A stretch of 34,595 bases of DNA from Klebsormidium nitens (lineage: Eukaryota > Plantae > Klebsormidiophyceae), in NCBI GenBank assembly GCA_000708835.1, contig DF237073.1, forward strand, positions 152,200-186,794, given 5' to 3'. The notes beneath the pieces are model-generated. The model was not told where the DNA came from, did no database searches, and saw only the letters and a list, made by a program, of their open reading frames with translations. The position numbers and the translations under genes are program-made. This document shows, piece after piece, positions 3,386-22,200 of the stretch (positions are counted from its first letter, which is position 1; each line of letters begins with the position of its first letter).

Positions 3386-6300
3386 ATGTCAAGCACCCCT
3401 GAAGCAGCAGAACAGAGTGGACCTTTCCGGGGGCGTGGGGGCAGGCAGGATGTGAGCCGGGGTAGTTTCGCAAGCAGGCCTCAGGCAAACCGGGGGCGCG
3501 GTGGAAGGGGGGGTCCAAGCCAGCAAGGGTCTTGGAGGAGCTCTGGGGCAGGCAGGGGGGAGGAAGAAAATAGGGGGGCAGAGCGGCGGGCAGAGGCTGA
3601 GGGTGGGGTGCTTGGAAGGCAGCCGCAGCATTACGCGCATGGAAGGGGGGGAGGTCGGCAGTCGGGGTTCCAGGGATTAAAGGATGGAAACGGTGAGCAG
3701 CGGGTCACTCGTCTTGGCCTCACTCTGATCGTCTAGACACACATGTCTTTTGCAAGTGTTTTGTCCTCTCCTTATGGTGGTGTTTTGAATCTCAGGGACT
3801 GAAAGGCTAAGGTGTGGTCTTTTCATCCAATCAACTTTTTTGCAACTGTTGCCTTATTCCATTAAAGTCGCTCTCATTGGAGAAAGCGGCTTTCTCTGGT
3901 TGAGCTTCATTCTGACGCCTCTTCATGACATGCAGGACACCCTGGTGCTTATGGTGGTGAAACTAGTTCTAGAAACACAAACAGGGGCAGAAACCCTTCA
4001 AGTTTGGACCGTCGGGAACCCTCTGACACCCATAACCAGCACCGGAAAGACCCAGTCGATGCCCCAACCCGCACGGATGGCCCACAAGCCCCCCGAACTC
4101 CGAACAGGGAGGAGCGACCCCCCCACTTTTCTGGCCGAGGGAGAGGTCACACCAGGGGAGGAGGTCGGCAGTCTGATCGGGGGGGCAGGTCTGGAGCGCA
4201 TGCTGAGGCCGCCACCTGGCGGCCGCTCGTTGGTGGGCCGGTTGAGAAGTGGAAGAATGTACCACAGTTGGTGCAGGAACTGGAGGAGAAGCTGGCGCGC
4301 GGGGAGGTTGAGTGCATGATATGCTATGAGCAGGTGAGACGTTTTCTCCTACGTTAGCCGTCCGCTTATAATGGGCTTGGGATAAGCTTGTATCTTCTGC
4401 TATCTGCAGGCCTGAGTCCTAAGCAGCAATTTTGGTTGGTCTAAGAAAACTATTTCAAATTCTGCTTTTCTGGTCGTGCCTCAGTTTTGCACGTGAGAGA
4501 CTTGGGAATGTCCTACTCTGGTTTGGGTGCCCTCCTCGTACCTTCCTCACTGCCATGTTGATTGTTGATTCCATGGTTTCTGCAGACAAAGCGGGTTTTT
4601 GGAGTTATTCTCGTGTTTTTGGAGTTCTTCTCGTGATCGTGCCACCATTATGGAACTCGTTAACCCATCAAAAGTCAGAGGTCCATTGAATGTCAGAGGT
4701 ATACTGTGCCCCGTATTCATTGTGCCCCAAGAAGACAAGCTGCATCTTTCTGTAGAATGTGACTTTTAAAGCCGCTTTTCTTTTGCCCCAATTGCAGGTC
4801 GCGCGCGCCAAGCCCGTGTGGTCCTGCTCCAGCTGCTTTGCCATCTTCCACCTCCCCTGCATCAAGCAGTGGGCGCGCGCCCCGTCCTCCTCCGCGGGCC
4901 CTGAACTCGCTTCTGCCAACCAACGACAAGCTGACACCTGGCGCTGCCCCGGCTGCCAATCCCAGCAAAGCACGAGCGTAGGCAACCTCCGGTACCGCTG
5001 CTTTTGTGGGGCGCGAAATAGTCCTCCCGACGATCCTTACCTGACCCCCCATTCGTGCGGGGAGCCGTGCGGTGCTTCCCTGGATCCGAAACGGGGGGGC
5101 GAGGTGCATTGCCCACACAGGTGTACGATGCAGTGCCACCCAGGTCCGCACCCCCCCTGCACGGCGATGGCGCCTCCTCAGAAGTGTTACTGCGGGAAAA
5201 CGACGCAGACGATGCGGTGCGGCGACCCGGAGCGGTCCAAGGGGCGGAGCTGCAGGGGTGTGTGTGGGAAGAGTTTGGCATGCGGGAGGCACAAGTGTGA
5301 GAAGAAGTGTCATGGGGGGGAGTGCGAACCGTGCGGCCAGGTGGTGGTTGGGAAGTGTTTCTGCGGGAAGAAGGAAGAGGCACTCGCGTGCGGGGAACTG
5401 AAGCAGGGGAGGCTTTCAGATGGGCTGTTTTCTTGTCAAGGCCAGTGTGGACACCGTCTCGATTGCGGGAAGCATGACTGCTCGAAGGTGTGTCACGAGG
5501 GGCCCTGCGGCGGGTGTGAATACGTCCCCGAACGGGTGTCAACGTGCCCCTGCGGGAAGAAGAGTCTGAGCCAGCTTGGGGCGGGCCAGAGGACAGAGTG
5601 CACGGATCCAATTCCTACGTGCGGGCAGGTCTGCGGGCGCCCGCTGCGGTGCGGCCACTTCTGCCAAGACACGTGCCACACGGGGGAGTGCTCCGCAAAG
5701 TGTACTGCGAAGGTTCGTCAGAGCTGCAGGTGCGGCGGCGAGTCGCGGACCGTCCCGTGCCACGTTGCGAACGGATCTGGGGGCGTGTTCGTCTGCACGC
5801 GGCCGTGCGGCCGTAAGAAGAGCTGCGGCCGGCACCGCTGCTCGGAAGTTTGTTGTCCGGGGGCGGTCGGCCATTCCGAAGCGCACCTCTGCACGCTGAC
5901 CTGCGGGAAGAAGCTCCAGTGCGGACACCACACGTGCGGGGAGTTATGTCACGCGGGGTACTGCCCCCCGTGCGTCAACAGCGGCTGGGAAGAGCTGCGG
6001 TGCGCATGCGGGAAGACGTCGATCCCGCCGCCGGTCCCGTGCGGCACCCCCCCGCCCGCGTGCCCGTTCCCGTGCAGCTTCGAACAGCCGTGCGGGCATG
6101 AAGCGACGCACTTGTGTCACACCGGTTCGCCGTGCCCGCCGTGCCAAGTTCCGGTGACGAAAGACTGCGCGGGGGGCCACGTCACGCTGCGAAATGTTCC
6201 CTGCGGTTCGAAGGATCTGAAGTGTACGCAGCCGTGCGGCCGGCTGCGCGAGTGCGGGGTGCATCAGTGCGCGAGGATGTGCCACGTGGCGCCCTGCAGC

Positions 6301-7716
6301 GAGGTAGAAGGGTCGGACGGGGTCCGGACCGGCATCTGGGGCCGGGAGAAGAAGCAGTCATGCGGGCAGCCGTGCAACGCCCACCGGAGGGAGTGCGCGC
6401 ACAGCTGTCAGGCGACCTGTCACCCAGGGGAGCCCTGCCCGGAGGTCGCCTGCAGAGAACCGGTCACCATTTTCTGCTCGTGCAGCAGACTCACAGCCCA
6501 GGTTCCATGCTGTTCGGGGGCCCCGGGGGGGCAGTCGCCGACCGAGAAAGCGGCAATCGTGAAGCTATCCTTTCCGCTGCAGCCGCTCCCGGGGGGAGTG
6601 TCCGTTCCGCTCGGGAAGCGCCAGCTGGCGTGCGACGAGGAGTGCCAACGGCTAGAGAAGAAACGGGTGCTCGCGTCGGCGTTCGGTGCGACCCCCCCAG
6701 GGGAGGGCGACAGCGCGGCGGCGGCGGAGGCCTTGCTGGAGATGCTGCGGCGGGAGCCGCAGTGGTTGGCCGCCGTGGAGTCGCGGCTGCAGGCGCTGGG
6801 ACAGGGCCTCAAGGGCGCCGTGCGGGCGCACGTGTTCCGGAACCTGCCCCCCGAGAGGAGAGAGATCATTCACCAGCTGGCGGAGCGGTGGGGCCTCGCG
6901 TCGCAGTCGGTGGGTCGGGAACCGAGGAGAGTGTTGGTCGTTTACGGGGTCGGGAAGGGGGGAAAGCAACAGGCGCCTCGGCCGCTGTCGCGTCAGCCGG
7001 TGGTCGAGGAGAGAAGCCTTTTGTTCAATGCAGAGTTGGACCTAGACTTCGGGTGCGTGCTGGAGTTTCGGGACTTGGCGCGGGAGACGAACCTCGCGTC
7101 GGCGCTACTGCGCTTCGCAGGCGAGTGCGAGCTTCTGTGGCTCAACGACCGGAACGCGCTGGTGATTTTCGGAGACGCAGGGCGGGCCGGGACGGCGCTC
7201 CGTTACTTGGACCATGCGACGGCGTACCGGGGGGCGGTCGCGCCTCCGGCGGTGACGAAACCGACCCCCCGGGGAGCGGATGGGGGGGCGAAAGTTGCCC
7301 GGCGAAGGGGGCAGGTGGAGAATTGGCACGACGACGCGTGGGGGGAGGACGAGGGCGCAGGGGGGGTGGGGAAAGCGAAGGCCGCGCCCGGGGCGTGGAA
7401 AGCGCGCGGCGAGGGGTTCAAGTTGAAGCAGGAGAACCTGTGGGATGCGCTCGGGGGAGAAGAGACCGGGGCGGCGAATATGAGAGCTTCGGCTGCGAAG
7501 GCCGACGATGGATGGACGCAAGTGCCCGCCAAGAGCAAGAAGGGGGGCGCAAAAGGGGGGCCGGTGAGTGAGGATTCGGGGGACAGCTTTATTGGGAGTG
7601 AGAGGGGGGTTTCCGCAGGAGCGCCGGGAGCGCAAAGGCCGCCGGAAATGCAGACCCCGCCGAAGGTGATTGATAAAGGGCAGGACATCGACGACTGGGA
7701 GCAGATGCTCGACTGA
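3386..7716 (+). CDS. NFXL1: NF-X1-type zinc finger protein (RING/PHD-like finger, NF-X1 repeats, R3H domain), ~1207 aa; exons 3386-3692, 3936-4333, 4798-7716
   Basis: Splicing joins VECMICYEQ|VARAKPVWSCSSCFAIFHLPCIKQWAR, the RING of NF-X1 proteins. Many CGxHxCxxxCHxGxCxxC repeats follow, then an R3H region (HVFRNLPPERREIIHQLAERWGLASQSVGREPRRVLVV) and a DDWEQMLD tail. Splice sites G|GTGAGC, TGCAG|, CAG|GTGAGA, TTGCAG| have phases 1 and 0; total 3624 nt = 1208 codons. Confidence 0.93.
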
Positions 7717-8936: not shown

Positions 8937-11900
8937 CTAAATTTGTTGAAGTCCCTGTGAAGCAGGATCTGCAAAGGGCACAAACAATTCCATCAGAAAA
9001 CGAGTTCAGACAATTTCAGACAGAAGCATATCAAAGTTTAGAAAAGCATCCTTCCAGTACAACAAACCCGCCAGGATACCGAGTCTGCGTCTCTTGGGCG
9101 TCTCCCAAAAGCACAGCTTGCGTAGAACAAACCGAGGGGAGCAAAACATTTTAGCGCCAAGCGCCATCTTTCCGCGCTCCTCCTGGTACATAATCCCAGA
9201 GCTCCGCAATCTTCTTTGCGCGTACTCGCGCGCATAGTCACAGCTCAGGCTACGACCAAAAGAGCGGATACGAGCCAACCCACCGACCCCCACCTTTTAG
9301 CGCTCCTCCTGGTACTTCTATCCCAGCTCTTCACCTCGCTTTTTGCGTATGCGCCCGCATCTTCCCAACTTAATATCCAAACAACAGGAAAGGGCGACAA
9401 CTTACCGAGCCCCAGCTTCTTCCACTCCTCCCGACACTTCGTCTCGAGCTCCTCGACCTGCTCTGCGTCTGCGCACACGCATCCCGGCTTCGAATCCAAA
9501 AAACAGGGAAGAATGACGACTCACCAAGCCCCAGCTTCTTCCGCTCCTCCTGGTACTTGGTCTCGAGCTCCTCTATCTGCTTCGCGTGTATCTGCGCGAG
9601 CAGGCGGTCCTGCTCGGCGTGCCGCAGCTGCAGCAGCCGCCACTCCGCGCCGAACTCGAACTCGACCGTGTTGGGCTGCGACGCGTGCGCCACCGCGATC
9701 GCGTTGATCTGCGCAAAGGAGTGACGTCAGCAAGCGAAATCAGATTTCGTCATTGGATACTAGATGACGTGAACAGTGCGGCAGACGATCACGCCAAGTC
9801 CGCGCCGAACTCGAACTAACCCGTGACGGTGTACCACCACAATTGCGTTGACCGTAGCCAGTCAGCTGGAATCAGTGACGTCAGCGAGCATGTGTGAGAT
9901 CATTGGCCCGGCAACAGAACTCGTATTGAGCGACTTGAGCTGCGATGCATGCGCCACCACGTCACTAGAATGTAGTCATGGGAAAGTAGACCTAGTCTCC
10001 CTCTTGAAGTTGTTCGACTCTACTGTTTTGTATTTGTTTTTTACTGGGTACGATAGTGCTAGGTATAACAAGCTCGATCGAAGGAATGGTGGGGTTAGAT
10101 TGGGGGTTGGGGTGGGAATCTGAGTGCAGAGCGCACAATCTATCGGTTCGATTATTGATTTTTATTTATTTCGCAAACTGTTCTTATCCTACCTAGAAGT
10201 TATCCTACCTATGTTACGATAATATTTGGCGTGAACCCCCACCTTATCCTGGTAGTGGCTGTTGCTCTCGGGTCGTCCGATGCTGATGGGCCCCGCAAAC
10301 TTGTTCTTGATCTCCATAGGCTGGACCCGGCGGCCCAGGACCGGTCTGCACAGTTTCACAGTAAGCCATCAGCCTCCACTCCGATACTCATGAAGCCTTT
10401 CAGAGGAAATTTCTGTCCGGTTCATCGAAAGAAGGAGGTGTGTGGTCAATGGCACGTCGGACGGCCTTTTAGAAAAAAGAGTGCCCGTTCGGTTAAGGGA
10501 AGAGAAGAATCTGGTCAGGGCACGTCGCGAACAAAGCTGCTCGGACAGTGTAGCCGCAGCATAACCAGATGTATCAAGTACGACATAAAGTAGAGCGTAT
10601 CGAGCAGCCATTCAATTAAGCGTCCCTTTTCCCGTCCTCGACACAGGAAAAGACGCAGAGCTTAGCTTTTTATCGGAAGTTCTAGAACGGACTCGAAGCA
10701 CCGCCAGAGTTGGAGTTTTGGAACGGCGACGCCAACATCCATCTATGCCACAACATGCGGACAGGCTCGGGTCGTTCCGACCCGCCGCTTACCTCGGGGG
10801 ATCCCCCACGCAAATCAGGTACTTCCGGAGCTTCAGGGCCGCTGCCGCCGCGCTCTCTCGCATGTCAAATATGGCGAGCGCCGACGCTGCCACGTGGGGC
10901 TCCGCCCGGAGCGACGGCAGCACCTCCACGTCTTCCAGCCCGGGGAACACGCCGGCCAGGCTCCGCTGAAGGCGAAAGAGATGGCGCGATCAGGATCCGC
11001 AGCTCTCGGGAAGTGTCTGGTTGACGAGGATACATTTCGATGATGCGTTGGGCAGACTCTGCGTCGTCCAGCTCGGAGAACGTCCCAGCCAGGCTCCGCC
11101 GAGGAAAGAAAGTGAGCGCTTCATCTTTGGCGCAGTGAGGACCGCAGATTTCACCGAAATATACTGCCATCAGACGATGGACGTCATTAATACGTTGGGC
11201 AACCTGTTAGTCGTCCAGCCCGTAGGAAACACGCCGGCCAGGCTTCGCTGACGGGAGGAGGACTGATGCGCTGTGGCGCACATAACATCCGCATATCCTA
11301 CAACAGCAAGACGTTGACTAAAAGTTGATGCGGAACACGTGCGGGCCAGACTGTAGGTACTAGGAGTCCAAGCAAATCAAAAAGAGGGAGCAGTAGTTGC
11401 AGATTCGCCCTGGGAAACGGTGCTGGACGTAAAGGCACTGTTAAGTCAGTTATGTGGAGTCTGGCTTGGAAATTGAGACACAATTGCCATCGGAAAGTAA
11501 GCGGCAAGGCTCTGCTCGAGAGAAAGCATATGAAGCTTCGTGGGGTTCACGGTCCGGAAAAACTAGCGAAGCGAGATATGCGGGAAGAGATTCAGGAAGG
11601 TGTGACGGGGTCGCTTGTCTTAGGTTCTTTTGCAGTCAGCTCCTCTGCGATTCGACAACTTTTCTGGCTGAAATTGAAACGCAAGATAACGCTTACAAGA
11701 AGGAACCGAGAAGGCACGACAGCAAATAGGGGGTGAGCGCACCAGGAGCTGGCGGGGGCTGCTGCCGGGCGCGAGGTTGTCCAGCTGGAGCACCCGCTTC
11801 TGCTCCAGCTTCTCGAGCAGCGCACGGCGCTTCCGCTGCACGGAATGCGGACAAGCAAGTATTAGGGTCTTGAAGACTCTCAAGCTTTTGGGGTTTGAGG

Positions 11901-14900
11901 GGGTTCGGTGAAAGGAAAGGGACGCAAGAGCAGAGGGAATGTGAGTCATTGAATAGACGGGCGCAAACAAGCGCAGAGTCGCATGGGGGAGGGCAAAGCA
12001 AGGCGGTGGACGCAGACCAGCATAATGCAACAGGCATTTCCGAAAGAGCGACAGATGGAGATTGCCGAAGCAAACGATGGCTGCAACCATCGTTTCGACG
12101 GCATTGAGCACGCTCTATGATAAACCCCGTTCTTGTCCAGGCGTTTCGATGCTCACCTCTGCTGCTGCCTTCTCCTCGGATATGGCACTCTGCAAACACG
12201 CAAAGAGAAAGAGTGAGTAACTCAGGGCGGGTTTCAAATCTTAGAAGGCTTGGGCGCTGGGAAAGCTGGAAGCAACCTTCGCACAGAAACAGCACGCGTA
12301 CTGCCAGCCTGATAAGAAAGCGAGAAGCAAAGGAAACGGTCGCCTTTTTCTGGACACACTTTGTGCTCAATCTTTTGGACTGAAGGGGTTCCTCCGTGCT
12401 CCTCAATGCTGCTCACACGGAAACCTCCACTCAGAACACACCGCGCCCTCTCTTTCAGTCACATCCACTTTCAGAAACGAAAGTAATCAAAAACTCTTTA
12501 CCAAAGATCACTTGCAGCCCATACAACCCCAACGCCTAGGCCGACCAACTTTTCCAGTCTCAAAGGCCAAAAACTTTTAAACCAGAATCCCCAGATCCAG
12601 CACCTTGCGCATGGTGGAATGGTACACATTTTCAAAGCAATAGTACATTCAAGAACACCACGACCTCAACCCACTGACAAGCCAGAAGCTGATGAAACCC
12701 CGAATTCCATAAACCATCTGGCACCTTGCGCATGGTGGGGTGGTACGTGTTCCCCGCCAGCTCCCGCGTGCGCTCCACTTGATCCTCCACCTTCTTCTTC
12801 TCCCGCGCAAACATCTCGGCCAACTCCCGACGCTCCTGCTCCGCTTTCCCCATCTGAGTCCGCATCGCCTCGTCAAAGCTGGCCTGCTTCTGCGGAAGGG
12901 GCTTCTTCGCAGCCACAACTTCTTTCTGAGGGGGTGCGACTGCGACTGCTTTTCGGGGGGGTGCGACCGCGACTTCTTTCTGGGGGGGTGCGGGAGCTGC
13001 CTCCCTGGGGGGAGGGGGAGGCGGGGGGGGGCCTGCCCCGGGGGGCGGTCCTAAAGGCGAAGGGGATGGTATTCGTTCTGAGGGTCCTGTCTCGAACGGT
13101 TGAGGAGATTGTTTCTCTGGTACGTTGACTCCGAGCGAAGGAGCAGTTCTCTTCTCAGGCTGTGTGACAGCTGGCGCGGATGATGACATTTTTCGCTCCG
13201 ACTGTGCAGTATTTGGAAGGGAGGGGGACGGTTTATGCTCTGCCTGCGTGTTCGCCACGGCAGATGGAGAGGGTTTGCGATCTGCCTGTGCGTCTCCCAG
13301 AGGAGAAGGGGATGCTTTCCGTTCCGGCGGAGGCACTGTTAAGCGGGACGGAGACGGCTTCCGGTCCGTTCCGTCTGCCCCCTGGACGGAACCCCCGGGG
13401 GGCATCCCCAGCGGGGAGCGCGGCCGGTGGGATCCCTTTGCCACGTGGGCGATCTCGGCGGAGGGCTTCCTTGCCTCCAACAATGACGCACCCTTCGGAG
13501 CAGCATCGGTTCCGCTGCTCGAAGCCAAACCCTCCCCATCCTCCGCCTTCTGCACAGAAACCCCTGCCTCCCAGCCAGCCAGATTCACCCCCCCAGAAAG
13601 CATCTGCGCCGGTTCTTCGCTGAAGCGGGTCGCCGCAGGCAGCCAGTCGTCGGCCGGGGCGCCCGGTGACTCCTGGAAGTCGCGCTCTTCGAGGCGGCGC
13701 AGCTCGTCTTTGACGCGGAGAAGCTCCTCCTTCTTGACCTCCCCGTGTTGCTGCCGGTAACGCTTGGTGAGGAAGTCGCCGCCGGGAAGGTCCGCGTAGG
13801 CGCCGCTTCCGGCACCCTCCGGCTGCAAGATGTCAATGGGCAATGCTCAATAAATGAGGTGCAATGTTGTTTCGTGGCTCTCGAGATCTCGATTGGGGGC
13901 TAATGAAGCAGACTGAATATGGTACCTCATCTTGAAAGGTCGAAAGGCCCAAAAGCTCCATGAAGATTTTCTTCGGTCGAAGGTCATGGTAGCCTGCTAA
14001 AGTACCAGTGGGCAAGGCTGGCGATGGACAGAAATGTAGAACAAAACTTCTACGATGGATCCGACAGATTACCAAGGTATCAGACCCAGCCAGAGGGGCA
14101 AAAGGAGCCTCTTTGAGTCTGTAAAACATAGCGAGCGCGTCTCTGTTTTACTTACGGTGCCGTGCGGCGACTCCTGGAAGTATCGCACGTGCACCAGGGG
14201 GTCCGCCCACTTGACCTTGGTCGGCCGGAACGCTTCATCGTTCTCCTCATACGAAGGGCCGTTGCTCCGGAACGTCGACGTCATCCCGCTCAAGATTTTC
14301 TGCAAAGGATTGTCCTCCATGGGGGGGACCGCCGGCCGTTTTCCAGACCCCTGTTTCTGAATCTCCGGCTTTTTGGGGGGTGCTCCGGGGGCCCCGGATT
14401 TTGGCGTGTCCGGTCGTTTTGGGGGGGCAGCGCCGGCGCCTTTGAAGGAGTCACTCTTTTTCAATGAATCGTTCCTGGTTAGAGGGTCGCTCTTCTTGAA
14501 GGAATCGCTCTTCTTCAGAGAGTCGCTCTTCTGCAGAGCTCCAGTCTTGTCCAAGGAAGAGCTCTTGACCAAACTGTCGCCTTTCTTCAACAAATCGCTC
14601 TTCTGCAACGCCTCGCTCTTCTTCAAGGGGTCACTCTTCTTCAGCGAGTCGCTCTTCTTCAACAGATCGCCCTTCTTGAGGGCATCACCATCCTTCACCG
14701 CCCCACCCTCCGGTCTCCCCGACCCCGACCCCTGTTTCGTCAGCACCTTCTGCGCCCCCCCTTTTATCGGCCGCTCGTCTTCGCTGCTGCTCGTTTCGCT
14801 GTCGCTGCTGTCGCTCGCACTCTCCAGCACCGGCTCTTTCCGTTTTGGGGGGGGAGGCGCGTCCAGGCCCCTCAGCAGCTCCGCCTTTTGCTCCCGCTCC

Positions 14901-17644
14901 GTCAGCTTGGGGCCCGCCTTCTTCTTCACTGTCACCCCCCCCTTCGCGTCAGGCTTTTTCAACCCTAGCTTCTTTTGCACAATGCCGCCCAAACCCGGCT
15001 CTGATCCCTTTGCGAGCGCTGGCCGCTTTCCCTGAACATCTTCCGGCTTATGTGTCTTCACCGGTCGTTCCAAATCCTTCTCAGGCGCCGGGGGCTTCGC
15101 CTTGGTGTCTCCCGGCTTTTGGATCTTCAGCGGTCGTTCCGGAACCCCCTTGCTCGGCTCCTTCTTCAGCCGGTCTACATCCCCGACAAATTTCAAAGGC
15201 CTCGCCCCTTCCCCGACCTTTTGAACTTTCGCAGGCCGCTCGGTCTCCCCCACCTTCTGTGCACCCCCGGCAGTCCCGCTACTTCCCTTCGGCACCACCC
15301 GCTCTTCCGCCGGCCTCTTCCCCAAAACGCTCCCCTCCTTTTCTCTCGCACGCAGCCCCAACGCGACCTTCTTCGCAAGATCCGCGTCCAAACTCGTCCT
15401 CGCCTTCGCTTCTTTCACTTCTGACGGAGACCCCTTCTTTCCAAGAAGCGCTCGCCTCTCTTCCAGGAGCTTTTCATATACTTGCTTCGAGTCCTTCCCT
15501 TCCTTCCCTTCTTTACTGACCGGACGCGCACTGGCCCCCTCTTCTCGTACCTTTGTCAGCAACTTCGGTTTCTTTTCCACTTTCTCCCCCCCTTCCACCG
15601 TCGTCTTCCCCAGCTTGGGAGGCTGGCTCAGCCCCACACCCTTCGCCCCGTCCTCTACTTTGACTGACGCACTCCCCCCCTCCTTCGCGTTGCCTTCGGC
15701 AACCCCCCCACTGGCCGGCTTTACTCTGGCCTCGCCCCCGGAACCGCTCGCGCCGACTTTCGACTTCGCGGGATCACCCAATGGGCGCGCAACTTTCTTA
15801 GCGGGTTTTATCGTTGCCAGGGGGGTGTCGGAGTCACCGCTGTCACTGTCCGAGGCGTAGCGCTTGGCCTTGCCGCTGGCCTTGTAGTTGGACGGCCGCA
15901 GGACGCCCTCTGCGGGACGGGCCGCGGCAGGATCGGACGGCGCTTGAGACGGGGGCGGTTCGGGGGCCCCCGGAGCGGGAGGGGGAAGGTACTGGTTGTT
16001 GAAAAGCAGTTCCGCTGCAAGCAAGGGTCTAGGCTTGAGACTGACCTTCTCCTATAAATTCTAAACTCTGGTAGTGCCGGCACTTTGCAGGTAGTTCCTT
16101 ATGTGTCTTTCTGGTATAAGCCCGTGGCCTTTGTCTTGCGCGCTCACTTGCAACACCCCTCAATGCAGGGAGACCTGTGAGCAAATGTTTGGTCACACCC
16201 CCTGACCTCGTGTACTCTAGTCGTGAACCTTTTTTCGAGATCTTACGCTTGAGGCAAAGCCTCTCTCAGGCAGGAAAGAGCAGCTTGCAGAAGACCACTG
16301 CATAACGAACCCATCATGTCACCTCAAAGTCCCTCCTCCTTTGCCTCGACGCGTATGGAAGACCGCAGAACCTATCAGACGAGCTTCAGTTGGCCTCCCC
16401 CTCACCTGACAGCGTTCTGAGCACCCCGGTGAGGCTGTTGACCAGCAGTCCCGGGCTGGCGCAGTAGGAGCTGTTGAACCAGTGCTCGCAGCCCGCCACC
16501 TCTGCCGTTGACGGATCGCGGCAGCGGGGGTGCCGGCCTGTGCAGACCATGTTCACCTTGCGGATGATGGTTTGCTGCACACCCAATAAAAAGAATCCTG
16601 ACTCTATCGTCGAAAGGCGGCTCGGATTGGCAACAGCCAGAGGGCTAGAGCTAGGCCAGGCACTGCTTATCCAGCTGGCGCTTGCGTGCCACTGTTTTCC
16701 CCACCGCAAGCTCGTCTAACAGGGCTTATTAGCCCACGAAGTCACCCCAGACAGACTGTTTCGTAAGTCGGTCTAGTCTTTCTTTGACGGATGTCGGCAA
16801 TTTGAAGTTCCCACCTCTGAAAGTGAGAGGCTCAAAGTGACCCAGACCTGCTCGAGTAGTGCCGAAAAGGTGACAGAGTGACCGTTCGGCAATATCTGCC
16901 ATTTGAACATGATGCAGGGGCATGTCAGCGCGAAGAAGTAATCCTTACGCAAGCGGCCCCCATAACCCGGTTTCTGCAAGGGCACAGCTTCTCCAACTGC
17001 AGCACCCTATTGCTTTGGCCTCCCAGGATCTTGACACAAAGGACAATAAACCTCTGCCAAGTGGCAGGCAGACATCCAGTGGATGCTTAAATGGGAAATC
17101 TCAACATGAAGGCAAGCATTCAAAAAGGTGCACCTTCATGCAGTATGCAAAAGACCTCCGCGTCGCGACAGGTGGCGCTCACCAGCTCGTTCTCGTCCTC
17201 AACCCCGCTCATATCGCTTTGCCGCTCATTGTACGAGATGAACACCTGCTTCTCCTTGTGCGCCCGCTTGTGCAGCGGCAGCTCCCGCAACGCGCGCCGC
17301 CATTCTCGCAGCCCCTGCGCGTCCGCGCTGACATCAGCGTTTGGCCGGAAGAACCAGCGCACGTTGCACCACTGCTGCGTGCCCGGCCCCTCGTCCCACA
17401 AGTCCACCAGTTTGCCAATAAAATGGGGCACGTTCTCGTCGTTGCTGTCGAGCAGGCACACGTCGCCCAGCTTGAACGTGTCCCCCAGGCGCACAAAGCT
17501 CTTGAAGTGGCGGAAAGTGGTCGACCCATCGCGCCGCTCGTGGCGGAGCTCCCCCCAGGGGAACATCACGATTGCCGGTGCTTCGTCTTCATCTTCAGAA
17601 TCCTCGTCCTCTTGGTGATCAGGGTCCAGTATGTCGAGAGCCAT
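8937..17644 (-). CDS. ASI1: ANTI-SILENCING 1 (ASI1/IBM2/SG1)-like BAH + RRM protein, ~1420 aa; exons 17644-17183, 16574-16406, 16014-14156, 13822-12725, 12189-12157, 11835-11743, 10965-10793, 10345-10243, 9708-9525, 9468-9406, 8968-8937 (alternative last exon 8924-8881)
   Basis: N-terminal BAH domain (FPWGELR...FKSFVRLGDTFKLGDVCLL...HFIGKLVDLWDE...CNVRWFFRP...|QTIIRKVNMVCTGRHPRCRDPS). C-terminal RRM-like region (RVLQLDNLAPGSSPRQLL|RSLAGVF...ALAIFDMRESAAAAALKL...GDPPR|PVLG) and AHASQPNTVEFEFGAEWRLLQ, resembling the recalled ASI1 C-terminal motif SHCSQPNTIEYDMAMEW. All 10 introns are GT-AG with continuous phases (0,1,0,0,0,0,2,0,1,1); total 4269 nt = 1423 codons. Orthology rests on motif recall and domain order. 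Confidence 0.8.
9150..9580 (-). repeat. Four tandem ~120-bp units of an exon end plus intron: two coding, two decayed
   Basis: The core CGCTCCTCCTGGTAC (or a variant) starts at 9175, 9301, 9423 and 9542, with spacings 126, 122 and 119. Confidence 0.85.
9644..9960 (-). repeat. Degenerate ~155-bp tandem duplication across an ASI1-like acceptor junction
   Basis: A 19-nt identity TCCGCGCCGAACTCGAACT occurs at 9644 and 9799, and GTGACGTCAGC at 9721 and 9875. A third partial copy CTGCGATGCATGCGCCACC lies near 9940. Confidence 0.8.
10925..11260 (-). repeat. Three degenerate ~140-bp tandem units across an ASI1-like acceptor junction
   Basis: CCAGGCT(C/T)CGC occurs at 10956, 11089 and 11238, each preceded by GTC(T/G)TCCAGC; intronic GTTGGGCA is shared between units. 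Confidence 0.8.
13054..13372 (-). repeat. Coding ~14-aa (42-bp) degenerate tandem repeat, RKPSPS-type, ~7-8 units
   Basis: RKPSPSRLTVPPPE / RKASPSPLGDAQAD / RKPSPSAVANTQAE / HKPSPSLPNTAQSE / RKMSSSAPAVTQPE ... RIPSPSP in the ASI1-like exon 4 translation. Confidence 0.75.
14441..14692 (-). repeat. Coding 18-bp (hexapeptide KKSDSL-type) tandem repeat, ~14 units
   Basis: Translation reads GDAL KKGDLL KKSDSL KKSDPL KKSEAL QKSDLL KKGDSL VKSSSL DKTGAL QKSDSL KKSDSF KKSDPL TRNDSL KKSDSF. Confidence 0.9.
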
Positions 17645-19275: not shown

Positions 19276-22200
19276 ATGGAGTCCAGTCCTCCCCTAATGA
19301 ACGAGAACGAAGGCTCCCAGCTCACTGCTTCAGAACAGGAGCACGCTGCCAGTAGGTCCAATGCTGCAGGAGCTGGCTCTCCCTCTGACAATCAAACAAA
19401 CGGTGCCTCTAATGTAGCGAGTATGGCAAAGGCAAGCGAGCCACATGACGACAGCCAGGGCTCAGCAGCTGACAAGCGCAGCTCAGACTTTGTCCTGGAG
19501 CCACTGAAAGTCAGCCCCAGCTCAGAGGACTTGTTCAACACCGGGGAGCTCTCTGAAAATTTCCAGACCAGGGGGGTGCGCGTGGTGGTGCGATGCCGCC
19601 CCCTGCTAGCACACGAAAGGGACCATGAGCAGCAGTGCATGACCCTGGATAAGGAGTCCAAGAGCGTCACTCTTCAGAGGTGAGATTGAGCGTGCACAGT
19701 CATCAGTGTTCGTTGCAACGAGATCTGATTTCAGCTGACACCAATGCTGGCACACAAGGTGCACGAATCTAAACTAATGGGGACAGCATTGCATGAAGTC
19801 ACAGTGGTGGTGGTTAATCAGAGGATGATACTTTCCTACGGAGTCTTTTAACTATGACTACCAATTTGCTGTGATATTGACTACCACCACTCTCAGTTGC
19901 CCCTATTGAGCTTTCAGACCCAAAATATAGTGTGGTGCCTTTACGGCAGTCTTATATACTTCTTCTAAACAATGCTGCACTTTTGTTGCAACAGTAAGAA
20001 CATCGACGAGCGCATGCGCCACTTCTTCTTCGACGAAGTCCTCGATGAAGGGTGCAGCCAGCAGGAGGCCTTTGCGCGGGTGCAGATGGGCCCCATGGTG
20101 GAGTCGGTGCTGGCAGGCTACCATGCCACCGTCTTCTGCTACGGCCAGACGGGCTCAGGTGTGGTTAACGCTCTTTTCTGTTCAAGGGTGCTTGTATACG
20201 CGGGACGGAAACTGAACATTGTTGAACACGTCTCTGTAGTTGTACCTGGGAAAAAGTTCTATGTCTGACTTACTCGCGCACAGTCAAAACTACTGCCTAC
20301 CGAGGAATTTTTCAAAGCGAAACTTTGAACCGTTTGCTCTGCAGGCAGGATGCAAAATTGACGTCCTCACATTCGCTTTACCATTCTCGGCTTCAGCAGT
20401 CCGCCTCAGACTCCCCATATCTCCCAATAGTCAAACCCGCCCTTTAATGCTGCCTGTGCAGGCAAGACGCACACGATGGAAGGGTTCACCTACCGTGCCT
20501 CTCGGGGAGCGGCCTCCCCGAAGGCACAGCTCGACACGGACCCAGAACAGCTGGGGCTGATTGCGCGCTCCATCTCGCTCCTGTTTGAGAGCATCAAGCG
20601 CAAGAAGAAAGCGGAGCCGCACGTGACCGTCAACGTCAAGTGCTCCATGGTACAGATCTACAAGGAACAGGTTAGGCTGCACTTGCCCAATCAGTGCTTA
20701 AAGTCTTCTCAGGTACCTGCCTCAAGAGGACAGGCCATCAAAATCTTGCATGCCAGAGAGTTGCCACGACAAGTGCCACGACAAGCTTCGGATACGCTCC
20801 TATTGGCCCCTTTGTGTGCTACGAATCAGCACCGACCATACTCACTTCAGCCAGGCGACCTGGCCAATCCCAGGACGTGATGCCTGGCCGGACAACAGAC
20901 GAGAACACGACAGATCAAGGAATCACTATCAGAATCTTGCAACCAAACTTCCGACCATCTAAATCTTGCTCCCCCCGCTTGCTCCCCCCGGGCTGACGTG
21001 CACTTCAGTTAAATCCAGGGATTATAACCCTCCCCTGCACCCCCCACAACCCCTCCCCCATACCAAACCCCGCTCTCCCACGACCCCACTCTCGGATACT
21101 ACGTTGGCTGTAACCTGATAGAGGAGGCCCCCCTCGCCAGGTGTACGACCTGCTGAACCCCACTCTGATGGACCCCAGCAGCACCCCCTTCTCGACCACC
21201 AGCTTCGGGCGGCCCCTTGCGCGCCCCCCGCAGCAGGTGCTCAAGGTGCGCTGGAACCGGCGGCGCGAATTCTACCTGGAGAACGTGTTCGAGTTCCAGT
21301 GCGCCACAGCGGACGAGGCGATCGATCACTTCCGCTTCGGGGTCAACAACAAGGTGGGGGAGGATTTGGTCTTTTGAGTTCTGTTGTTCAAGTCTTTATC
21401 CATTTTGTTCTGTCCACAAAGATAAAGGAAACTCGACGTTGGTTCGAGTGCGGCGCGGTCAATCTCGGTCACTTTGGCTTCGGGGTCAACAATAGGGTGC
21501 GGAAGAGGGTGGTATCTTGTTCAAAGTCGGGTCTGTAGTCAACTTGTTCCATTCTCTTGATTGTAGTCAAAGGTTCACGTAAATATGATGTATGTTTAAC
21601 AGAACGCGTTGACGAGGCGCTCGAGCGCTTCTGCTCCGAGAAACAACTCGGTTGGAGGGCCTTTTGGGGTTTCGGGCCACAAAAAGTTTACTGTAAAGTC
21701 AGCGGCTGTGCTGCCGAAGCCTCTGCTCCAATCTGCCTCGTGGTTGGAGGCGGTGAAGCTAAACTAAGCTTTTGAAGACCTTGACATTAGCTGCAACGTT
21801 GCCTCACGACTTTATGTGAGCTCTTGTCTTGTCGGGTCAGTGCCTGACACGTGTCACCTTTCCAGACAATGGCGAGTCACAAGATGAACATGGCCTCCAG
21901 CCGATCCCACTCGCTCTTCACGGTCATCGTGGAGACTGCCCCAGCCTCTGCGCCAGAAGACGCCATTGTCAGGTAAGTGATCACGCAATCTCCTCCTTCA
22001 AACCCACGATACAGCGGTTTCAGGCCCAAACGCGGCGTAGTATGTTTCAAAGATGCGACTGCCGAACATATCTGACATAAGAAGAACTGTGCCTGTTACG
22101 AGGCTGGCGGCCCGCTCACAGTCAGACGAAACCGAATTTGATTCATGATGACCTTCACCTTAGAACATCTGACTAAGTCCGTTGCGCTACATCAAGCGGT

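Follow-up and report, generated by a model that had tools for sequence, protein, structure and literature searches.

A candidate PP1-docking motif in a conserved island of an ASI1-like protein of Klebsormidium nitens

Does the ASI1-like protein of the alga Klebsormidium nitens itself carry a docking site for the phosphatase PP1? The question is raised by a short string, KVKW...VRYF, encoded in a window of 34,595 nucleotides (the whole stretch of DNA analysed; contig DF237073.1, positions 152,200 to 186,794 of the forward strand), which an initial annotation had read as a PNUTS-like PP1-docking motif inside an ASI1-like factor. Recruitment of phosphatases by plant nuclear chromatin and RNA-processing factors is known from LD-APRF1-TOPP4 and AIPP3-AIPP2-CPL2, and association with AIPP1 and EDM2, binding of SUVH6 and control of polyadenylation are known functions of the ASI1 family in Arabidopsis and rice. 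The genomes of two relatives, L001 and L002, the only relatives found, were used for comparison.

The string lies within an ASI1/IBM2-like gene that runs from about 17644 to 9520 on the minus strand, has at least 8 exons and encodes about 1,380 aa. Its exons are as follows.

17183-17644, minus strand: exon 1, which opens with MALDIL... at the start codon and covers the N-terminal part of the BAH domain; its donor is CTG/GTGAGC.
16406-16574, minus strand: exon 2, the C-terminal part of the BAH domain (QTIIRKVNMVCTGRHPRCRDPS...WFNSSY); 91% DNA identity to L001.
14156-16014, minus strand: exon 3, about 620 aa, K/S/P-rich and disordered, with a few conserved islands.
12725-13822, minus strand: exon 4, with a conserved helix-prone start (PEGAGSGAYADLPGGDFLTKRYRQQHGEVKKEELLRVKDELRRLEER), then a P-rich disordered region and the end ...TYHPTMRK/GTGCC.
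11743-11835, minus strand: exon 5, the start of the RRM-like region (RKRRALLEKLEQKRVLQLDNLAPGSSPRQLL); kept in L001 and L002.
10793-10965, minus strand: exon 6, the core of the RRM-like region (RSLAGVFPGLEDVEVLP...ASALAIFDMRESAAAAALKLRKYLICVGDPP); DNA identity 90% to L001 and 71% to L002.
10243-10345, minus strand: exon 7 (RPVLGRRVQPMEIKNKFAGPISIGR...); kept in both L001 and L002.
9523-9708, minus strand: exon 8, with the C-terminal signature of ASI1 (NAIAVAHASQPNTVEFEFGAEWRLLQ...); the model is provisional at its 3′ end, stop codon included.

The end of exon 1 was picked by phase and by fit to the land-plant consensus (N.L..I..K...VCT). By eye, exon 2 aligns with the land-plant ASI1 consensus VIxGKCxVLCTSKDxRNPQPS..YFFYR, exon 5 fits ..V..LQNFDPSYTS.E and exon 7 fits GRPL.A......K..KF.GHI.I. 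The frame of exon 3 is open in both relatives, with omega of about 0.26-0.36, and exon 3 matched no Pfam family. The exon 4 acceptor is TTGCAG/CCG in phase 0; the DNA block 13827-13685 at the start of this exon is kept in L002, and a three-way alignment of exon 4 was made. Each splice junction inferred here keeps phase and has canonical GT/AG boundaries, and the order and spacing of the exons are the same in the window, L001 and L002. The 3′ end of the gene is full of local duplications. A frame-0 open reading frame at 10868-11206 that looked RRM-like by eye was rejected: it partly duplicates the exon 6 junction in a different frame and has no support from Pfam or BLASTP.

The sequence comparisons identify the gene as an ASI1-like, that is ASI1/IBM2-type, factor of a Klebsormidium-type streptophyte alga, and the family assignment made in the initial annotation was borne out. 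The BAH domain, RRM-like domain, KF.G.I segment and C-terminal SQPNT[IV]E[FY]E..W follow one another as in land-plant ANTI-SILENCING 1 proteins (ASI1/IBM2/SG1, the BAH-RRM members of the ASI1-AIPP1-EDM2 complex). Exon 1 alone, which holds only part of the domain, matched the Pfam BAH family at E 3.7e-6; for that reason its 27.3 bits fall short of the gathering score, 30.8. In phmmer searches with exon 1, the L001 and L002 orthologues were followed by a Diphasiastrum ASI1-like protein (P0004), the best match from outside the clade among 1.84 billion representatives (E 6.4e-5, 39% identity over the BAH domain). The near-invariant BAH residues of land plants are present in the algal protein, the shared positions including WG, F.SF, P..IGK, W and WFFRP. 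At the C-terminus, exon 8 matched residues 860-907 of P0004 (BLASTP E 4e-9) and keeps the H, S, Q, N, T, E and W columns that are invariant in 18 land-plant sequences; the signature SQPNT[IV]E[FY]E....W, invariant in the same number of land-plant members, is present in the algal gene.

Similarity in the RRM is weak. Exon 6 aligned with land-plant ASI1 at the position of the RRM (hhalign E 0.0021, probability only 13%), the RRM-like domain being split over three exons; exon 6 found no BLASTP match in P0004, and neither the piece bearing exon 5 nor a piece over exon 6 in a wrong frame found any in Pfam. The algal protein differs from land-plant ASI1 also in the 39% identity of its BAH domain and in its size, about 1,380 aa where land-plant proteins have about 500-900 aa, and the conserved islands of its disordered insert of ~1,000 aa, including KVKW..VRYF, have no counterpart in the land-plant sequences compared.

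On the minus strand, exon 3 ends at 14156-14235 in ...FRPTKVKWADPLVHVRYFQESPHGT, followed by a GTAAGT donor. Translation of the minus strand over window positions 14150-14500 gave ...EENDEAFRPTKVKWADPLVHVRYFQESPHGT, with the last codon, ACC, ending at 14156; KVKW falls at 14218-14207 and the final F of VRYF at 14179-14177. Translation, donor and gene model agree in placing KVKW...VRYF at the end of exon 3, as had been claimed. Two features are defined here.

14156-14305, minus strand: conserved island of 50 aa that closes exon 3 (LQKILSGMTSTF......YEENDEAFRPTKVKWADPLVHVRYFQESPHGT).
14177-14218, minus strand: candidate PP1-docking string KVKW-ADP-L-V-HV-RY-F, with RVxF and possible Phi_R, PhiPhi and Phe positions.

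The candidate string occupies about residues 810-823 of the algal protein, inside the disordered insert. KVKW fits the RVxF consensus, [K/R]-X0-1-[V/I/L]-X-[F/W] (bioRxiv 10.1101/2023.09.20.558696), so that its initial reading as an RVxF match stands. The pattern [K/R]-X0-1-[V/I/L]-{P}-[F/W] takes in KVKW of the window and L001 and KIKW of L002. The stricter five-position consensus (Hendrickx et al. 2009) does not accommodate KVKW because a T precedes its K. The sequence downstream of KVKW, LVHVRYF, could accommodate accessory PhiPhi and Phe motifs, the patterns HV..F and LV.V..F being present in the window and L001 when compared with published motifs at the level of pattern. Readings of the island as a SILK, MyPhoNE, PIP-box or LIR motif were rejected by eye, since key residues were missing or not conserved.

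Patterns of the RVxF type are common, and many conserved matches are non-functional; in LAP1B, binding goes through only one of three RVxF matches. Across exons 1-4 (about 1,200 aa), KVKW is the only RVxF match and about 0.74 are expected from shuffles; with one match against about 0.7 expected, the RVxF pattern by itself therefore proves nothing. Six-frame translation of the window gave about 1 match per 1000 aa. When the island's own composition was shuffled, RVxF appeared in 6% of the shuffles and RVxF together with a PhiPhi-type pair in 1.6%.

The conservation of the motif, in contrast, exceeds chance. An alignment of orthologues had been proposed for examining KVKW/VRYF, and the motif was kept in both close relatives found, as KVKWAEPLVHIRIF in L001 and KIKWADPLV--TFF in L002. 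All three sequences share K, W and the final F, and V is replaced by I in L002, a change that the consensus allows. The accessory motifs do not keep a fixed register, because two residues between RVxF and the terminal aromatic residues are deleted in L002. In the island alignment 30 of 58 columns are invariant across the three genomes; three-way identity is 60% for the island against 27% for the remainder of exon 3, and the motif falls within one of the exon's three most conserved 25-aa segments. Between the window and the distant relative L002, dN was 0.21 in the island and 0.63 in the remainder of exon 3, a 3-fold difference, with dS called saturated. The island and L002 share a DNA block of 78% identity.

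The island looks lineage-specific, its carriers being three closely related genomes, because the land-plant homologues recovered match RVxF only in the BAH domain or not at all. Indeed, 26 land-plant ASI1 homologues (and one neighbour lacking the BAH domain) had RVxF matches only inside the folded BAH domain, or none. Comparison of exon 3 with 18 land-plant ASI1 relatives by hhalign gave only a non-significant match of 10 columns just after the BAH domain. A word-index search with exon 3, the island being the scored region, returned the L001 orthologue only; the same kind of search with the 1,293-aa open reading frame of L002 returned nothing among full-length candidates of 711-2,262 aa. Two metagenome scans, one for the island and one for the C-terminal signature, produced pattern matches, none of them a relative. 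The initial annotation knew of no link between land-plant ASI1 and PP1; the confinement of RVxF to the BAH fold of the recovered homologues fits this, as does the absence of any paper connecting ASI1 with PP1 in a literature search.

The motif is flanked by K/S/P-rich low-complexity sequence. Upstream of it, Tandem Repeats Finder reported the following.

14487-14677, minus strand: 18-bp tandem repeat, 10.6 copies, encoding an [LF]KKSDS-like hexapeptide.

The hexapeptide repeat is a possible phosphosite array. AlphaFold2 modelled the 58-aa island mostly as coil at low confidence (mean pLDDT 62.6, pTM 0.16), from only three sequences, and gave KVKW..VRYF no secondary structure. The island had been described as ordered, a description that this model did not bear out. 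Judged by its low-complexity flanks and by the three-sequence model, the motif segment appears accessible and disordered; it is predicted to be non-globular, as is usual for docking motifs. Look-alikes of the island in the ESM Atlas (best score 0.77) were uninformative.

The designation "PNUTS-like" stands as a short-motif analogy; homology to PNUTS was not supported. PNUTS (PPP1R10) is likewise a largely disordered nuclear protein with a central RVxF ending in W (TVTW in hPNUTS), followed by hydrophobic PhiPhi and Phe positions, and structures of PNUTS-PP1 have been solved, e.g. 4mp0. A profile of the island searched against all Protein Data Bank chain sequences nevertheless gave 0 matches at E<=10, with no homology to PNUTS, MYPT1 or spinophilin. 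Neither a TFIIS N-terminal domain nor a CCCH finger was detected by Pfam at E<=1 in exon 1, an exon 2 piece, exons 3 and 4, the piece bearing exon 5 or the C-terminal exon, which is what these scans covered; the same scans returned only BAH and one faint GM130_C match. The algal protein differs from PNUTS further in having no Arg motif at the PNUTS spacing and no evidence of a link to WDR82/APRF1.

Known PP1 regulators offer parallels in pattern. The algal H-V-x-x-F copies the HV(114-115)..F118 arrangement of PhiPhi and Phe reported for Leishmania PNUTS, and the Phe pocket is used by F413 of hPNUTS and F82 of GM. KVKF is the proven PP1-binding motif of MYPT1; with MYPT1, spinophilin and GM the algal string shares a core KVK[FW], then an acidic residue and hydrophobics 4-10 positions downstream. 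We take LVSVKEF of GM to line up residue for residue with the algal LVHVRYF. These proteins are, however, unrelated to the algal one, in which RVxF and the first hydrophobic residue are separated by a shorter spacer (ADP), one that is not constant across the three algal sequences.

The island may instead be a site or small structural element with a role other than binding PP1, such as contact with an AIPP1/EDM2-type partner, formation of a dimerisation unit together with the helix that opens exon 4, or import or regulation, the RVxF resemblance then being coincidental. We give this reading close to an even chance. Conservation goes beyond the motif, spanning about 110 aa across the exon 3/4 junction (ILSGMTSTF, YEENDE and, in the exon 4-start helix, DFL.KR..QH.E.VK.EE..R..ELRRLEE), far more than a docking motif needs. 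Two other islands of exon 3 are equally conserved without RVxF, and the frequency of RVxF in shuffles of the island and the lost accessory register in L002 point the same way. Against it, the invariant residues include exactly the RVxF anchors, with consensus-compatible changes; KVKW..VRYF was modelled as coil and not as part of a fold; and the island showed no recognisable match to any other known motif or family.

It is improbable that the conservation reflects constraint on the nucleotides, for instance by splicing signals where exon 3 ends, or too little divergence among the three genomes, the peptide having no specific function. The motif does lie <60 nt from the donor site, only three related genomes were available, and dS to L002 is also somewhat lower in the island (1.0 against 2.15 in the remaining exon 3). 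Selection nevertheless acts on the island protein, because its dN/dS is 0.21-0.32 with many synonymous differences; moreover, the neighbouring intron is not alignable with L002 and in-frame conservation resumes in exon 4. Very improbable is a division of the locus into separate genes, with the BAH exons apart from the RRM-like and C-terminal exons and any PP1 dock in an unrelated BAH-only protein: the best Protein Data Bank matches of the BAH exon are TNRC18 and BAHCC1 rather than plant BAH proteins, and the gene model has a provisional 3′ end amid abundant duplications, but its in-phase canonical junctions, the recurrence of exon order and spacing in both relatives and the ASI1-type domain order all speak for one gene.

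Docking of PP1 by KVKW..VRYF is the best specific hypothesis for the island, a tentative one with somewhat less than an even chance. KVKW with ADPLVHVRYF would dock the PP1 catalytic subunit (TOPP in plants), V and W entering the RVxF pocket and the downstream L, HV and F using the Phi_R, PhiPhi and Phe pockets, as in PNUTS, spinophilin and GM. The BAH domain would contact chromatin or a partner and the RRM-like domain RNA, so that PP1 would be delivered by the algal protein to its chromatin and nascent-RNA targets. At these sites the phosphatase could dephosphorylate the protein's own Ser-rich repeats, or the elongation and 3′-end machinery. PP1 binding, the pockets used and all effects downstream of binding are what we infer from the sequence.

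It is a more doubtful proposition that the ASI1-type BAH-RRM factor of the alga itself serves as a regulatory subunit of PP1, a PNUTS-like adaptor bringing PP1 to chromatin-associated nascent transcripts. It would represent a direct link from anti-silencing and alternative polyadenylation to PP1 in an early-diverging streptophyte lineage, a link that land plants would have lost or would make through separate proteins (LD-TOPP4, AIPP2-CPL2). Like PNUTS-PP1 and its proposed plant counterpart LD-APRF1-TOPP4, the algal protein would connect PP1 to transcribing Pol II and 3′-end events. In Arabidopsis, AIPP3-AIPP2/PAIPP2-CPL2 (BAH-PHD-CPL2), whose components were first found as ASI1-immunoprecipitated proteins, likewise has a BAH-domain chromatin factor bringing a phosphatase to Pol II. 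That complex recruits the CTD phosphatase CPL2 via a PHD partner, whereas in the alga the candidate is PP1 and the dock would lie in the BAH protein's own disordered region.

The stakes are modest, for a short-motif prediction in three related algal genomes with no sign of relevance to crop or model land plants. Mechanistically, it is not understood how Pol II comes to traverse heterochromatic introns with the aid of ASI1-type factors. Direct docking of PP1 by the algal orthologue would, if it occurs, suggest a concrete effector activity, in which the phosphatase dephosphorylates the elongation and termination machinery or the orthologue's own Ser-rich repeats. It would also provide a plant-lineage parallel to PNUTS-PP1, with V and W of KVKW as a simple mutational handle.

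Splice sites of the ASI1-like gene were inferred by reading the sequence and compared with two related loci, L001 and L002, and searches were done one exon at a time. Junctions were GT/AG throughout and every one was in phase. The predicted product is some 1,380 aa long and carries the motif at approximately residues 810-823.

Exons of the ASI1-like gene and motif residues (the latter from translation)
17644-17183, minus: exon 1, start codon and N-terminal part of BAH
16574-16406, minus: exon 2, C-terminal part of BAH
16014-14156, minus: exon 3, disordered region, ~620 aa
14218-14207, minus: KVKW
14179-14177, minus: F of VRYF
13822-12725, minus: exon 4, helix-prone start, then P-rich disordered region
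11835-11743, minus: exon 5, start of RRM-like region
10965-10793, minus: exon 6, core of RRM-like region
10345-10243, minus: exon 7, RPVLG...KFAGPISI segment
9708 to about 9523, minus: exon 8, C-terminal signature

Pieces of these exon-intron junctions were duplicated locally at a spacing of ~120-150 bp (9157-9587, 9644-9825, 10924-11254, 12595-12746): the exon 4 donor region in two copies (L001 has this duplication too), the exon 6 acceptor region in three, the start of exon 8 in two, and, in four copies (TRF period 119), the 3′ terminus of the last conserved exon plus its GGTGAGT. These copies may serve as alternative or decoy splice sites, or may have arisen by slippage. A kinesin motor gene (19276-20300, plus) lies upstream of and divergent from the ASI1-like gene and is syntenic in L001 at 272-1009 (Pfam Kinesin, called genes). 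The 3′ end of the ASI1-like gene faces a convergent, intronless 985-aa ORF (4759-7716, plus), whose NF-X1-type zinc-finger product has R3H and NFXL1 RRM-like domains (Pfam E 4.8e-31).

The initial annotation had called the gene ASI1-like, an identity supported by the BAH domain, the RRM-like position and the C-terminal signature. The last conserved exon, NAIAVAHASQPNTVEFEFGAEWRLL, matched the extreme C-terminus of the Diphasiastrum protein P0004 (E 4e-9) and retained columns invariant across 18 land-plant sequences. With the C-terminal region of P0004 as query, another 27 land-plant proteins were recovered, some of which (Cryptomeria, Dendrobium) bear the name "protein ANTI-SILENCING 1"; BAH was on record in 26 of the 28, P0004 included. 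In the land-plant profile, exon 6 aligned where the RRM lies, a weak match (hhalign E 0.0021, probability 13%), and by eye exons 5 (..VLQLDNLAP..) and 7 (RPVLG...KFAGPISI) resembled the consensus segments V..LQNFDP and GRPL.A...KF.GHI.I. Nearly invariant ASI1 BAH residues were retained in the BAH exon. Together, these features support an architecture of the ASI1/IBM2/SG1 type, described in the literature as BAH plus RRM, to which the algal protein, unlike that family, adds a ~1,000-aa disordered insert. Taken alone, the BAH exon (17183-17644, minus) found its best solved-structure matches in the BAH domains of animal TNRC18 and BAHCC1 (E 8.6e-6 and 9.7e-5), ahead by sequence of every plant BAH structure in the Protein Data Bank; it is thus the architecture as a whole, and not the BAH domain, that carries the family assignment. 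A phmmer search of 1.84 billion representatives with this exon returned only four relatives, namely the L001 orthologue, P0003 (60% identity), P0004 (39% identity, E 6.4e-5) and a 154-aa fragment, indicating an unusually divergent BAH domain.

Translation of minus-strand 14500-14150 read ...PLQKILSGMTSTFRSNGPSYEENDEAFRPTKVKWADPLVHVRYFQESPHGT; the final codon of exon 3 ended at 14156, with GTAAGT directly after, confirming the motif's coordinates, sequence and placement at the end of exon 3. The flanks are low-complexity and K/S/P-rich. An 18-bp tandem repeat of ~10.6 copies (14487-14677, minus, exon 3) encodes [LF]KKSDS-like hexapeptides, possibly an array of basophilic-kinase phosphosites adjoining the candidate PP1 dock; its counterpart differs in copy content in L001 and is a longer, K-Q-rich variant in L002.

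A word search with the island returned a single protein, P0001, encoded on Logan contig L001 (14.5 kb); the synteny of this contig with the window includes the upstream kinesin gene. P0003 is located on L002, a JGI metagenome contig whose DNA similarity to the window was confined to discrete blocks: the BAH exon, two exon 3 islands, the motif island (14292-14166, 78% identity), the exon 4 start, three RRM exons and the C-terminal exon.

The RVxF pattern by itself was not beyond chance, with one match in exons 1-4 against ~0.74 expected from shuffles and ~1 per 1000 aa in six-frame translation of the window. As judged from alignment, its placement is not random. The last 50 columns of the three-way exon 3 alignment were 60% identical in all three sequences versus 27% elsewhere, dN to L002 was 0.21 in the island versus 0.63 in the rest of exon 3 (dS 1.0 and 2.15, at or near saturation), and DEAFRPTKVKWADPLVHVRYFQESP ranked third by conservation of all 25-residue windows in exon 3. 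The motif reads KVKWAEPLVHIRIF in L001 and KIKWADPLV--TFF in L002; all three sequences keep K, W, ADP/AEP, LV and the final F-QESP, and the V to I change is allowed by the consensus [K/R]-X0-1-[V/I/L]-X-[F/W], X not P (quoted in bioRxiv 10.1101/2023.09.20.558696). Shuffling the island residues gave RVxF in 6% of trials, and RVxF with a PhiPhi-type pair in 1.6%. Conservation in close orthologues, the first test proposed by the initial annotation, was indeed found, but within three related genomes only.

The main rival is that the island binds another partner, or, together with the exon 4 start helix, makes up a small element, the RVxF match being coincidental; we give this close to an even chance. 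In-frame conservation ran on into exon 4 (EG.GS..Y..L.G.DFL.KR...QH.E.VK.EE..R..ELRRLEE), making the constrained unit ~110 aa, more than a bare docking motif needs. As LAP1B shows, in which just one of three RVxF matches mediates binding, conserved matches are often non-functional. A model of the island alone showed coil across the motif at low confidence (pLDDT 62.6, pTM 0.16), a prediction that suits a docking peptide and comes from an alignment of three sequences only. Two other exon 3 islands, GVLRPSNYK.S.KAKRYASDSDS (15842-15907, minus) and KKAGPKLTEREQKAELLR (14783-14972, minus), both basic, equalled the motif island in conservation and may serve as nuclear localisation signals or as sites for partners.

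The accessory positions were compared with known docking strings. MYPT1 reads T-K-V-K-F-D-D, and GM has ...LVSVKEF, which can be lined up with the window's LVHVRYF. The spacer ADP after KVKW is short, an Arg motif at the distance seen in PNUTS is absent, and the 2-residue deletion in L002 moves the accessory-residue register. The MYPT1 motif is KVKF (PMC4504001). In human PNUTS the motif is 398-TVTW-401, within an RVxF-PhiPhi-Phe-Arg string, and hPNUTS F413, GM F82 and Leishmania PNUTS F118 occupy the Phe pocket, with HV at 114-115 ahead of F118 (bioRxiv 10.1101/2023.09.20.558696); this HV-x-x-F spacing is matched by H-V-R-Y-F in the window. PNUTS homology was rejected, since neither a TFIIS N-terminal domain nor a CCCH finger appeared in Pfam scans covering exon 1, a piece of exon 2, exons 3 and 4, the piece bearing exon 5 and the C-terminal exon, and the island profile had no match at E<=10 in the Protein Data Bank sequence set; "PNUTS-like" therefore describes an analogy of mechanism, not family membership. 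An ESM Atlas search with the island gave nothing useful.

Among the 28 land-plant proteins, 20 had RVxF matches inside the BAH domain only (..K[VI].WFFRP.. in 19; P0030 with a second match earlier in its BAH), which are inaccessible because the domain is folded; P0031 (Miscanthus), a neighbour without BAH, had KIEW elsewhere, and seven had no match. No land-plant counterpart of exon 3 was found by hhalign, and database and metagenome searches found no further algal carriers of the island. As far as databases reach, the island appears specific to a small algal group and may reflect gain in that clade or loss in land plants.

PP1 docking by this protein is a tentative proposal to which we assign somewhat less than an even chance. 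The BAH and RRM domains would position the protein on chromatin and nascent RNA, the KVKW string would dock PP1/TOPP, and docked PP1 would act on phosphoproteins nearby. A candidate substrate is the protein's own Ser-rich array, ~10 copies of [LF]KKSDS 60-170 aa upstream, plus the acidic SDSDS/SDSSDSETSSSEDE tracts. Alternatively, the substrate might be the Pol II elongation and 3′-end machinery, by analogy with PNUTS-PP1, whose proposed plant counterpart is LD-APRF1-TOPP4 (PMC7616277), and with the BAH-PHD-CPL2 complex, members of which were originally identified as ASI1-immunoprecipitated proteins. No paper connecting ASI1/IBM2 with PP1 turned up in a full-text search. In sum, the gene encodes an ASI1-like protein that carries a candidate docking motif for PP1.
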